A program made the position numbers and the translations under genes. The notes under the pieces were generated by a model. The model did not search any database and was not told the origin of the DNA. It saw only the letters and a program-made list of their open reading frames with translations. Shown here in pieces: positions 1,326-4,360 of a DNA stretch of 64,000 nucleotides. The DNA lies in sequence record MW879344.1; one strand, given 5' to 3'. Within the stretch, counting starts at the first letter, position 1. Every line of letters begins with the position of its first letter.

Positions 1326-1391
1326 TTTTAAAAAGATTGCATAAAGTACTTGCAAAGGTTTACCGGTATGATAATATCTATCTCGTCAACA

Positions 1392-1423
1392 CGACACCGC
1401 TCTTTAACAACTTGCTAGACAAT
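1392..1423 (+). promoter_or_regulatory. rrn-type boxA (NusB/NusE) antitermination site
   Basis: CGACACCGCTCTTTAACAACTTGCTAGACAAT vs E. coli rrn leader CGGCACTGCTCTTTAACAATTTATCAGACAAT (recalled from memory), 26/32 identical; boxA core GCTCTTTAACA exact; weak promoter TTGCAA(1350)/TAATAT(1372) upstream. Confidence 0.7.
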
Positions 1424-1479
1424 TACTTGATAGTGATTCTTCTCTTTAGAAATAAGGAAAAAGAAAAACAAAAAAGTAC

Positions 1480-1507
1480 TTGACAGCAAGAATGGAAAGT
1501 GTAGAAT
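1480..1507 (+). promoter_or_regulatory. sigma70-like promoter with A-rich UP element
   Basis: AAAAAGTAC-TTGACA-16-TAGAAT. Confidence 0.6.
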
Positions 1508-1514
1508 GTTGGTT

Positions 1515-1655
1515 ATCGAAAGGCGGTAAGGTTCGCCGGATGATAGGAAAGGGTAACAGGGCAAAATAAAGTACTGTTGCAGTGTGAAGCCGAAAGTGCT
1601 CACATAGCCTTATAAAAAGCTTACTAACTGTAAGTGACCTATCTACCGCCTAACG
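1515..1655 (+). ncRNA. Candidate multi-branched structured RNA (~140 nt)
   Basis: Closing stems AGGCGGTA(1521-28)/TACCGCCT(1644-51) and GATAGG(1542-47)/CCTATC(1638-43) enclose three hairpins, one with a GAAA tetraloop; own promoter; no ORF. Confidence 0.45.
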
Positions 1656-1784
1656 ATGTAACAAAAAAAGTTTCTAAGAAGTTGAAAAAAGTACTTGACG
1701 GATAGAAACGAAACGTAGTAATATGTGTTCAAGCCAAACGGCTTACCAAACAAACTAAACTAAACTTTTAAGAGGATTTAAATC

Positions 1785-2450
1785 ATGACTACTACCAACA
1801 ACGCAAAAGCTACCCGTATCACTCTGAACTCTATCGTTTTCGCCAATGCTCCAGTACTGGCAGCGGTTGCCGAAGGTGAACAGCCTCACAGCAAAGAAGT
1901 GATCGCACAGCACAAAACGCAGGTAGCGGAGTTTGTTGCAAATCAGGGTAAAGAACTGGCTGGCTACATTCTCGGCAAAGTTGAAACCCCTGACGTGATT
2001 CTGGCGATTCTGAAAGAAGCCGCTAAACAGGTTCCAGCAGTACAGAAACAACTGGCAGAAGAAGCCGCGAAAGCTGAAGCCGAAGCCGAAGCACAGCGTA
2101 AAAAAGACGCTGAAGCCGCTGAAGCGAAACGCAAAGCTGATGAAGAAGCACTTCAGGCCGAAAAAGATAAAATGTTGAAAATCCTTACTGATAGCGGTCT
2201 GGATCTGGAAATCGCTCAAACAATGGTCGCCGCTGGCCTGAAAGCAAAAGCACCAGCAAACGCACCGAAAAACAGCTACGAACGTGTAGCGGTAACGGTG
2301 AACGGCAAAGGCTATGATGTTCCAGTACGTGGGAACATGAGCGAAGAACTCAAAGCACTGGTTGCTAAAGACGGCGGGGATCGTGAAGCGTTTATCAACA
2401 AATACCGCAACGAACCAGCACCAGCAGCAGAAACCAACACCGCCGAATAA
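1785..2450 (+). CDS. Possible H-NS-like nucleoid/DNA-binding protein (221 aa)
   Basis: SD GAGGA; promoter TTGACG at 1695; Ala/Glu/Lys coiled coil, then LTDSGLDLE and a C-terminal TVNGKGYDVPVRGN..LKALVAKDG..EAFI resembling the H-NS DNA-binding domain; function tentative. Confidence 0.5.
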   Translation: MTTTNNAKATRITLNSIVFANAPVLAAVAEGEQPHSKEVIAQHKTQVAEFVANQGKELAGYILGKVETPDVILAILKEAAKQVPAVQKQLAEEAAKAEAEAEAQRKKDAEAAEAKRKADEEALQAEKDKMLKILTDSGLDLEIAQTMVAAGLKAKAPANAPKNSYERVAVTVNGKGYDVPVRGNMSEELKALVAKDGGDREAFINKYRNEPAPAAETNTAE

Positions 2451-2470
2451 TATCACGGCGTAACGCAAAA

Positions 2471-2490
2471 GGGGGCTAGTTAGCCCCCTA
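2471..2490 (+). terminator. GC-rich hairpin after the first gene
   Basis: GGGGGCTA-GT-TAGCCCCC; no clear U-run. Confidence 0.45.
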
Positions 2491-2562
2491 AGCCGTTCTA
2501 ACAGTACTGTAATGCAATCGGTTATAGTACTGTTAGAAACGCTTAAAACAGCGTACATTAAG

Positions 2563-2620
2563 GATTATCTGATAAATAAAAACGGTTGAAGTAATAACAA
2601 GCGTTTTTATAAGGATAATC
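2563..2620 (+). promoter_or_regulatory. SD-sequestering hairpin with late-promoter-like GATAAATA in the left arm
   Basis: GATTATCT/GGATAATC and TAAAAACG/CGTTTTTA stems; SD AAGGA at 2611-2615 partly paired. Confidence 0.5.
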
Positions 2621-2622
2621 AA

Positions 2623-3039
2623 ATGGGAAAACATTTATATAGGAAACCAGAACCCGCAAACGTTCAAGGCGTTTGCTGCGTAGAAGGTTGTAACAACTTA
2701 CAACAAGTAGTTAGAAAGGGCAAGTTTGGCCCATTGTGTTCACCTTGTGATCGTGCAAGGTACAACACAAAAGAAAAAGAGAAGTATGCAGGACTTACCA
2801 AATTATACGGACTAAGTAAAGAACAATATGATCTAATGTTGAGTGAGCAAAATCATTCTTGTTATATATGCGGTATAAAGGATATTGATTGCCCAAAATC
2901 AGTTTTACATGTAGATCATGATCACAGTACTGGAAAGATACGCGGTTTATTATGCCATCATTGCAATACTGGATTAGGACACTTTAAAGACAATGTAGAA
3001 CTGTTACAGAAAGCAATTGAGTACTTAAATCTTAATTGA
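2623..3039 (+). CDS. Endonuclease VII-family nuclease
   Basis: YGLSKEQYDLMLSEQNHSCYICG..LHVDHDHSTGKIRGLLCHHCNTGLGHFKDN: Zn-binding and His-Me motifs of the T4 gp49 family. Confidence 0.9.
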   Translation: MGKHLYRKPEPANVQGVCCVEGCNNLQQVVRKGKFGPLCSPCDRARYNTKEKEKYAGLTKLYGLSKEQYDLMLSEQNHSCYICGIKDIDCPKSVLHVDHDHSTGKIRGLLCHHCNTGLGHFKDNVELLQKAIEYLNLN

Positions 3040-3050
3040 GAGCGTAACAC

Positions 3051-3320
3051 ATGGAACTAAAACCAATTTCTGATCTGATTGATCGCAGTACTCGGATCGC
3101 CAGAACGATGACCGCCACCAGCCCGACAACATCGGTTTATAGTGGTTATCTGGCGTTTGTAGTTAATGGCGAATTAGTACAACGCAGGATCTACGATATG
3201 GCATATAATCATCTTTATGATTCTTGTATGTTCATAACTCACAAGAAAGTTAATTATGCCGTAAATCTTCCATGTAAGCCCCTTAGCGGTGCGTTTAACG
3301 CTGAATCACTAAAGGCATAA
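3051..3320 (+). CDS. Hypothetical protein
   Basis: ORF with SD-like GAG; followed by terminator 3331-3365. Confidence 0.6.
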   Translation: MELKPISDLIDRSTRIARTMTATSPTTSVYSGYLAFVVNGELVQRRIYDMAYNHLYDSCMFITHKKVNYAVNLPCKPLSGAFNAESLKA

Positions 3321-3330
3321 GGTAACATGT

Positions 3331-3365
3331 AAAACCGTGTAGGATCGTTCCTATGCGGTTTTTTT
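3331..3365 (+). terminator. Intrinsic terminator
   Basis: AAAACCGTGTAGGA/TCCTATGCGGTTTT + T-run. Confidence 0.7.
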
Positions 3366-3440
3366 ATTTGTCGAAAGTACTTGCAATAAGTTTTAAGTAC
3401 TGTAGAATATCCTATATCGAAACAACACGGAGTAAATGAA

Positions 3441-3665
3441 ATGAGATTAAGTAAACTGTTAGCGGAGTTGTCGAAGGTTGCAGAACTTGCGAAAGTACAC
3501 GGCAACAATGATCCCGATATTTCTTTTTGGCATGATGAAATTGAAACAATCGAACATTTAGAAGTATCATTCCCGCAAGATCTGGATGATGCCAGAATAC
3601 CGACTAAAGTACTATCGGCAACTGAGAAAGGAAACTTTTCATTTAGATTAGTACTACCAGAATAA
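3441..3665 (+). CDS. Hypothetical early protein
   Basis: SD GGAG; own promoter TTGCAA/TAGAAT 3381-3408. Confidence 0.75.
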   Translation: MRLSKLLAELSKVAELAKVHGNNDPDISFWHDEIETIEHLEVSFPQDLDDARIPTKVLSATEKGNFSFRLVLPE

Positions 3666-3723
3666 TCTTTACAAAAATGGGGTTGACAGCCAGCCCCAAA
3701 AAATGCAATAATATATACAAGCC

Positions 3724-3764
3724 AGAGAAATGGCGTAACCCACAGGGTGCAGAGATCCGTCCGT
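3724..3764 (+). repeat. Tripartite element, copy B
   Basis: AGAGAAAT..CCCACAGGGT..CCGT, 11 nt after TTGACA(3683)-18-AATAAT(3707-12). Confidence 0.8.
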
Positions 3765-3781
3765 AGAAAATTCAGTACTTA

Positions 3782-3822
3782 ATAGATATATCTCGGCACC
3801 CTCTAGGGTATCCGATTTCTCT
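3782..3822 (-). repeat. Tripartite element, copy B' (convergent with B)
   Basis: Minus strand AGAGAAAT..CCCTAGAGGGT..CTAT, 11 nt after TTGCTT-17-CATAAT. Confidence 0.8.
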
Positions 3823-3967
3823 CGTATGTAAGTATTATGCCAGTACTGAGAACATAAAGCAAGGGGTAAACGAAAATAAAAATTAAAATTCAAATGAAAA
3901 AAGTACTTGCATTAAGTTTTAAGTATTGTATACTTACCTTATCGAAACAAATGAAAGGATTTAAGAA

Positions 3968-4360
3968 ATGGAACGTAATGAGCAATTTAGATTAGTTCTT
4001 GAAGTACTGGAAAACATGCAAGCTTGTTTAGATGTTAATGATACATATGTGCGTATCAATGGCAAGAGTTTTAATCTTAATCGACATGCGGGGATCTGCT
4101 GGCATGTTCTCGCCTATACTCCTAATAGTGATTATTCAGGTATTGGGTTAGAATATCTTTCCCCGTTGTTTGTTAGTATGGGCTTACATCCTCATTATCC
4201 TGTAGAAATGCAGATCGTTAATGAGTTAGATCAAGCCCGTTGGATTCATTCAAAAGCAACAGATCAATATAATATCTTGGGCGAAGAAGGAAAGATCCGC
4301 CGTAAACTTTTAAAGGATTTGATTCAGTACTATAAAAAAGAGCTTGCAATTGAATCGTAA
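3968..4360 (+). CDS. Hypothetical early protein
   Basis: SD AAGGA; own promoter at ~3908-3935. Confidence 0.75.
   Translation: MERNEQFRLVLEVLENMQACLDVNDTYVRINGKSFNLNRHAGICWHVLAYTPNSDYSGIGLEYLSPLFVSMGLHPHYPVEMQIVNELDQARWIHSKATDQYNILGEEGKIRRKLLKDLIQYYKKELAIES

Follow-up and report, generated by a model that had tools for sequence, protein, structure and literature searches.

Antitermination driven by BoxA is a textbook feature of lambda-like temperate phages, which combine it with the N protein, and of rRNA, suhB and CRISPR transcripts in cells. For antitermination of the rrn type, boxA alone is sufficient. On rrn operons, BoxA RNA binds NusB-NusE and, together with NusA, NusG, SuhB and S4, gives rise to a fast, Rho-resistant RNA polymerase (PMC12360218). 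Among gammaproteobacteria, BoxA follows the consensus GYTCTTTAANA (Baniulyte et al. 2017, PMC5725501), and it also acts at suhB (PMC5725501). Furthermore, Salmonella and Vibrio CRISPR arrays carry a stand-alone BoxA upstream (Stringer et al. 2020, as cited in bioRxiv 10.64898/2026.07.09.737519), and that preprint reports BoxA to be common in CRISPR leaders and to promote complete transcription of the array. Precedents for a stand-alone BoxA ahead of untranslated RNA are consequently available at rRNA, suhB and CRISPR arrays (PMC5725501; PMC12360218; bioRxiv 10.64898/2026.07.09.737519). While this type of element is well known and its stand-alone uses are known in cells, its occurrence in a virulent jumbo phage, considered here, appears to be new: a full-text literature search found no report of boxA in jumbo or virulent phages, and the genome paper of the jumbo phage CBB (PMC5259590) is silent on it.

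The window analysed here is the first 64 kb (64,000 nt) of the genome of Erwinia phage pEa_SNUABM_49 (hereafter pEa49; MW879344.1, 358,049 bp, 34% G+C, Eneladusvirus), a virulent jumbo phage which, like its relatives, is a Rak2-like virulent jumbo myovirus. Over the first 6 kb of the window, Serratia phage BF and sister Erwinia phages share ~99% identity, Yersinia phages fHe-Yen9-03 and fHe-Yen9-04 share 81-83%, and the Mimasvirus members CBB, GAP32 and XbC2 together with Erwinia phage Kaldavass share a patchy 71-80%. The leader, from the first early promoter (P1) to the start codon of gene 1, was aligned across eight lineages (pEa49, Yen9-04, CBB, GAP32, XbC2, Kaldavass, L055 and L068), L055 and L068 being jumbo-phage contigs from IMG/VR (355 and 358 kb). 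Because RpoD-like early promoters with UP elements are predicted in this phage group, alongside phage sigma factors, in the CBB genome paper (PMC5259590), host RNA polymerase is taken as the relevant enzyme. Elsewhere in the genome, a tRNA with anticodon CTA annotated at MW879344.1 290410-290485 (locus L251 26410-26485) is labelled tRNA-Pyl and would be of the amber suppressor type; it sits among ~40 phage tRNAs interspersed with small ORFs. The features of the first early unit, in window coordinates, are as follows.

1350..1377, + strand: early promoter P1, with a -35 hexamer TTGCAA (1350-1355), a 16-nt spacer and an extended -10, TG-n-TAATAT (1369-1377)
1398..1411, + strand: BoxA element CGCTCTTTAACAAC, at ~+15 to +28 of the predicted P1 transcript
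1399-1409, + strand: consensus core GCTCTTTAACA, fitting GYTCTTTAANA
1412..1423, + strand: rrn-like flank TTGCTAGACAAT, resembling TTATCAGACAAT of Enterobacterales rrn leaders
1424..1479, + strand: leader spacer between boxA and P2, unstructured and poorly conserved, with no boxB-like hairpin and no boxC
1480..1507, + strand: early promoter P2 (TTGACA, 16 nt, TAGAAT; 11/12 in the promoter scan), found in all lineages, downstream of boxA
1514..1658, + strand: structured non-coding RNA of ~145 nt, beginning at the P2 transcript start and read through by P1 transcripts
1695..1724, + strand: early promoter P3 (TTGACG, 18 nt, TAATAT; 9/12)
1785..2450, + strand: gene 1, 221 aa, phrog_20181, the first ORF of the P1/P2/P3 unit
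2623..3039, + strand: endonuclease VII-family gene (Pfam PF02945, E = 4.8e-25)
3051..3320, + strand: gene 3, 89 aa, phrog_14550
3331..3370, + strand: strong intrinsic terminator, a 14-bp stem followed by a T-run

The original prediction held that 1392-1423 matches, at 26/32 positions and through the whole boxA core, an E. coli rrn leader string. Both parts were confirmed: the string given there is exactly the rrnB leader of E. coli K-12 in NC_000913.3 (cggcactgctctttaacaatttatcagacaat; locus L001 412-443), and the phage 32-mer CGACACCGCTCTTTAACAACTTGCTAGACAAT on the + strand agrees with it at 26/32 positions, including 12/12 over the 12-nt core GCTCTTTAACAA. Short AT-rich motifs recur at 34% G+C, and GYTCTTTAANA is matched four times in the window and nine times in the whole genome versus ~4.3 matches expected from composition, which lends some weight to a chance resemblance without function. 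Set against this, the 1399 site is the sole intergenic, sense-strand and promoter-proximal consensus match in the genome, the other eight of the nine lying antisense to + strand ORFs or within ORFs, and the longer form GCTCTTTAAMAA has a single occurrence in the 358,049-bp genome, at this site. Further BoxA copies were sought genome-wide, including ahead of the tRNA-rich region, and none was found. The site itself is non-coding, since no CDS is annotated over it and indels between lineages break the reading frame; within the leader, no ORF is kept among the eight lineages and none covers the boxA site.

Alignment of the eight diverged lineages showed that, within the 445-nt non-coding leader, conservation is highest in the core CGCTCTTTAA[C/A]AAC. 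Ten of the 11 columns of the block TCTTTAACAAC are invariant, versus 24% of columns across the leader, where mean column identity is 59%, and the block also outranks the promoter hexamers in conservation. Conservation in related phages had been proposed as a check on the element, and the core is indeed kept throughout, with GYTCTTTAANA fitted by 8/8 lineages and the sole variable column falling on the consensus N (C in three lineages, A in five). The C variant (AACAA; pEa49, Yen9-04 and L068) has a 12-nt core identical to the E. coli leader boxA, and the A variant (AAAAA; CBB, GAP32, XbC2, Kaldavass and L055), GCTCTTTAAAAA, is exactly the boxA of the E. coli 16S-23S spacer. Also fixed is the distance from the -10 to boxA, at 21-22 nt in 8/8 lineages. 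To judge from these alignments, the core is under strong purifying selection. The sequence next to it is more variable: the pEa49 flank is identical to that of E. coli rrnB at 14/20 positions (binomial p ~7e-5), and the corresponding figures are 11/20 in Yen9-04 and 8-9/20 in the remaining lineages. Given the single GCTCTTTAAMAA copy, the 14/20 flank match and the retention of the core in eight lineages whose leaders average only 59% identity, the resemblance goes beyond chance, and a fortuitous match, to which we assign a negligible probability, is effectively refuted by the conservation of the sequence. The predicted BoxA signal is shared by a clade of Rak2-like jumbo phages comprising Eneladusvirus, Mimasvirus and two metagenomic lineages. 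Among the more distant Rak2-like phages Munch, EJP2 and Hallingskeid, no sense-strand BoxA was found in the stretches around the gene-1 homologues, which for Munch and EJP2 include the record start.

Comparison with the rrn leaders of candidate hosts, a second check proposed for the element, showed a shared core. Enterobacterales rrn leaders, including those of Pantoea, Serratia and Pectobacterium, read CAC[T/C]GCTCTTTAACAATTTATCAGACAAT; those of Erwiniaceae, Serratia and Pectobacterium carry the same core and AGACAAT as the phage, with a differing stretch in between, and Pantoea leaders L166 and L168 carry CACCGCTC, as the phage does. Because Enterobacterales rrn leaders carry this core, the host machinery would see the same core on the phage transcript. 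Direct capture of the element from a host rrn leader was also considered, and none is visible, a search of 185,579 species genomes of bacteria and archaea having returned no copy of the exact phage 26-mer.

The string CGCTCTTTAAMAACYTG was present in at least 117 IMG/VR viral contigs. Among the 118 matches listed, three fall within stop-free frames of at least 600 nt, 39 have a promoter-like site no more than 90 nt upstream, and 76 have strong structure downstream; at the level of sequence, the pattern among these listed matches is that of lambdoid nut sites. Many temperate-phage contigs among the matches listed carry the same CGCTCTTTAACAACYTG as the jumbo phages, and some small-phage leaders, again among the matches listed, share the CA-rich pre-boxA string catcaacacgaaacac with jumbo phages. 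The jumbo-phage element follows a practice widespread among phages, that of putting boxA into the early leader, but lacks the boxB partner. These matches also bear on the proposal that the 14-mer acts as DNA, either bound by a phage or host DNA-binding protein or serving as a promoter-proximal element, its likeness to BoxA being coincidental. Conservation alone cannot separate a DNA from an RNA function, and promoters and repeats are frequent in this region. The motif, however, is not palindromic, its orientation and promoter distance are fixed, the tolerated substitution falls on the consensus N and reproduces two natural rrn variants, and the same 17-mer recurs, among the matches listed, in the early leaders of many unrelated phages. 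A DNA-level site appears improbable on this evidence.

Beyond the core, the likeness to an rrn leader is limited. The similarity around AGACAAT noted originally is present in pEa49 but is not conserved outside the pEa49/BF group. Likewise, the hairpin assigned to the boxB position (1383-1394) does exist as a stem of 3-4 bp (~-1.9 kcal/mol), but it is absent in 4/8 lineages; it is located at or before the predicted transcript start. RNAalifold applied to the whole P1 transcript recovered no conserved pairing between boxA and P2, hence no nut-type boxB, and the 60 nt downstream of boxA have a minimum free energy of only -8 to -13 kcal/mol. Searches for boxC (TGTGTGGG) within 70 nt of boxA gave a best match of 4-5/8 in every phage lineage, whereas the rrnB control returned 8/8 at +14 downstream of boxA. 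For a leader-trailer helix around the structured RNA, RNAalifold on the whole P1 transcript yielded only the closing stem of that RNA. A complementarity found by hand between CAACUUGCUAGA and UCUAAGAAGUUG had raised the idea of a mini-rrn operon, which was dropped when RNAalifold did not recover the pairing. Since AGACAAT is lineage-specific and a conserved boxB, a boxC and a leader-trailer helix are all absent, the element is not a full rrn-leader mimic, and its original description as a near-exact one was overstated; only the boxA core is conserved.

Examination of the promoters placed boxA within the phage's own early transcription programme. P1, from which transcription is predicted to start near 1384, had been described as a weak promoter. 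This was only partly right: with 8/12 hexamer matches (4/6 for each hexamer) P1 falls under the promoter scan's listing threshold of 9, and it is a real consensus match, with hexamers conserved in the eight lineages, that belongs to the phage's own early class. It shares the motif AAAGTACTTG with P2 and P3, and as the leftmost rightward member of the AAGTnCTTG class it justifies the earlier placement of the element at the head of the early region. AAGTnCTTG accompanied by a -10 occurs in 30 + strand copies genome-wide, 22 of the 30 at 1.3-19.1 kb, and 11/30 class members have TTGCAA or TTGCAT as their -35 hexamer. These early promoters cluster within the first 19 kb, in agreement with the length of the terminal repeat predicted for the relative CBB (22 kb). 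The boxA-bearing P1 is the first inward-facing promoter and lies ~1.4 kb from where the predicted terminal repeat of CBB begins.

This promoter arrangement also informs the suggestion, included in the original prediction, that the phage uses boxA to shut off host rRNA synthesis, with an abundant P1 leader RNA acting as a sponge that titrates NusB-NusE off the host rrn operons. Lying very close to the 5' end of an early transcript, a perfect BoxA would be accessible at once. The host, however, has seven very active rrn operons with two boxA sites each; the phage has a single copy per genome, transcribed from a P1 (8/12) that scores under both P2 (11/12) and P3 (9/12), and no stabilising structure surrounds it. 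With one genomic copy behind one non-consensus promoter, the sponge is disfavoured, and we consider it very improbable.

Three tandem rightward promoters thus precede gene 1, and P1 transcripts cross ~400 nt of untranslated RNA, with ~375 nt between boxA and the nearest real start codon; from P3, the leader of gene 1 is 60 nt long. The structured RNA at 1514-1658 forms ~45 pairs by RNAalifold, which predicted 62 pairs, 13 of them compensatory, for the whole P1 transcript in seven lineages. Rfam searches with the leader and this RNA returned no family at gathering or permissive thresholds, only chance-level matches. CBB and GAP32 annotate small CDSs over the structured RNA, which are probably spurious. 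As the structured RNA is conserved, has many covarying pairs and lies ~115 nt downstream of boxA, an order that resembles that of boxA and then rRNA, Nus factors tethered to BoxA might act as a folding chaperone, holding the 5' end near the polymerase and thereby aiding folding or processing of the RNA. In L068, however, this RNA is almost wholly deleted and replaced by a short hairpin, with P1 and boxA unchanged; the RNA is also served directly by P2, which is stronger than P1 and lies downstream of boxA, and the 3' flank of the RNA is not connected to the boxA region by a leader-trailer helix. A chaperone function appears to us to have a low probability. More generally, because L068 retains P1 and boxA without that RNA, boxA is not there only for the structured RNA, and the originally proposed role in transcribing it is weakened as a dedicated one.

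Another alternative draws on suhB and hisG, where BoxA regulates negatively: Nus factors at BoxA would cause early termination and so spare P2 and P3 from occlusion by transcription from P1. BoxA does enhance Rho-dependent termination in some contexts (PMC5725501; PMC12360218). The suhB mechanism, however, needs repression of translation at a start codon near boxA, and the leader holds no conserved ORF; since the nearest start codon is ~375 nt away, suhB-like repression is unlikely, and negative regulation as a whole strikes us as quite improbable.

Further features surround the unit. An inverted repeat, GTTTCTA (1669-1675) and TAGAAAC (1702-1708), brackets the UP element and -35 of P3 and covaries between lineages (in CBB, GATTCAG ... 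CTGAATC); it could form an RNA hairpin in read-through transcripts or constitute a pair of operator half-sites. The endonuclease VII gene is an insertion relative to fHe-Yen9-04, in which it is absent between g001 and g002, and is likely a mobile homing-type endonuclease. With the exception of this insertion, gene 1 and its neighbours returned no informative family from Pfam or PHROGs. Upstream of P1, two members of the early promoter class that point leftwards (GAAAAAAGTCCTTGCAT, 17 nt, TAATAT or TATTAT) lie within a 40-nt direct repeat on the - strand at ~927-888 and ~1148-1109, making the 2-kb non-coding region a dense divergent promoter hub, which separates leftward genes at the genome end from the rightward early region. 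Additional rightward sigma-70-like promoters are located in non-coding DNA at 269-297 and 941-970, and a terminator-like hairpin at 409-425, ~110 nt past the first of these, suggests additional small RNAs. Iteron-like repeats TCTAGAC and TAGATGG in an 8-nt phase (spacings 8, 16, 24 and 32) occupy 669-795, and the stretch conserved furthest among relatives is 636-1034 (~80% in GAP32, XbC2 and Kaldavass), a region that could be an origin, a packaging site or a protein-binding array. Also upstream of P1 is a direct repeat, TGTAyACGTATAAAGGAAAG, with copies at 1176-1195 and 1286-1305 that are 95% identical and 110 nt apart; its ATAAGGAAGGAAA part is also found in XbC2 and Kaldavass, and it may be a regulator binding site.

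Given a sense-strand BoxA consensus ~15 nt into the P1 transcript together with the purifying selection acting on it, recruitment of the Nus machinery is the best reading of the element. We consider it reasonably probable that the leader of the first rightward early promoter carries a functional, stand-alone and N-independent BoxA RNA signal of the rrn type. Once ~30-40 nt of RNA had emerged, host NusB-NusE(S10) would bind boxA, and NusA, NusG and SuhB would join, such that host RNA polymerase would become the Rho-resistant, fast form found on rRNA operons. The converted polymerase would then cross the ~400 nt of untranslated sequence, comprising the leader, P2, the structured RNA and P3, before transcribing the first early operon, and may also continue further into the ~19-kb early region. 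Several observations count against antitermination. A scan of C and G content in windows revealed no clear C-rich, G-poor rut-like stretch in the leader, and the terminator at 3331-3362, which is likely the end of the first early operon unless read through, may end the unit after ~2 kb. Dependence of the operon on P1 may be doubtful, as transcripts from P2 and P3, both downstream of boxA, would not contain it. The absence of boxB and boxC, and of the motif near gene 1 of Munch, EJP2 and Hallingskeid, points in the same direction.

An extended form of this proposal, in which a virulent jumbo clade hijacks ribosomal antitermination without an N-like protein and BoxA makes a fast, Rho-proof 'pioneer' polymerase across the leader and much of the ~19-kb early region, is in our estimate unlikely. 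Such a polymerase would possibly help early take-over of the genome or DNA entry and, if real, would represent the first described case of a lytic phage with a stand-alone antitermination signal of the rrn type. If the element is functional, Rak2-like phages, which depend on host RNA polymerase, would solve the Rho problem of a first, largely untranslated transcript via the ribosomal system. It would place a viral example among the growing number of BoxA targets outside rRNA and, through host nusB/nusE alleles or a few point mutations in the core, allow early transcription to be manipulated by simple genetics in a phage group that is used against fire blight.

These features can be placed alongside the known systems. 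The BoxA of the rrnB leader and spacer is, like the phage site, promoter-proximal and followed by untranslated structured RNA, and begins, as estimated from sequence, ~+33 from rrnB P2 versus ~+15 in the phage. Both rrn promoters lie upstream of boxA, whereas two of the three tandem phage promoters lie downstream, and the boxB hairpin, boxC, leader-trailer helix and rRNA of the rrn arrangement are all missing from the phage unit. Lambda nutR (CGCTCTTA, 10 nt, GCCCTGAAAAAGGGC) likewise belongs to a phage early leader, and its boxA starts with CGCTCTT as in the jumbo phage. There, however, boxB stands 3' of boxA, while no boxB hairpin follows the jumbo-phage boxA; the lambda core is a weaker 8-mer, in contrast to the full rrn consensus of the jumbo-phage core; and the jumbo phage, virulent and with a genome of 358 kb, is unlike the lambdoids. 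None of the five ORFs scanned at 1785-4357 with Pfam and PHROGs was assigned to an N-like family, N proteins being small and divergent. The BoxA of the suhB 5'-UTR (PMC5725501) has the same consensus as the phage site and is one of the Nus complex targets outside rRNA, but it lies <50 nt from the start codon and represses, whereas the phage BoxA is ~375 nt from the first start codon. CRISPR leaders, like the phage, have a single BoxA heading a long untranslated transcript, and bioRxiv 10.64898/2026.07.09.737519 proposes that this BoxA blocks Rho without an extra factor of the phage type. Downstream of the CRISPR BoxA is a repeat array, and downstream of the phage BoxA are a ~400-nt leader, a structured RNA and protein-coding early genes; the former is a cellular signal, the latter a viral one.
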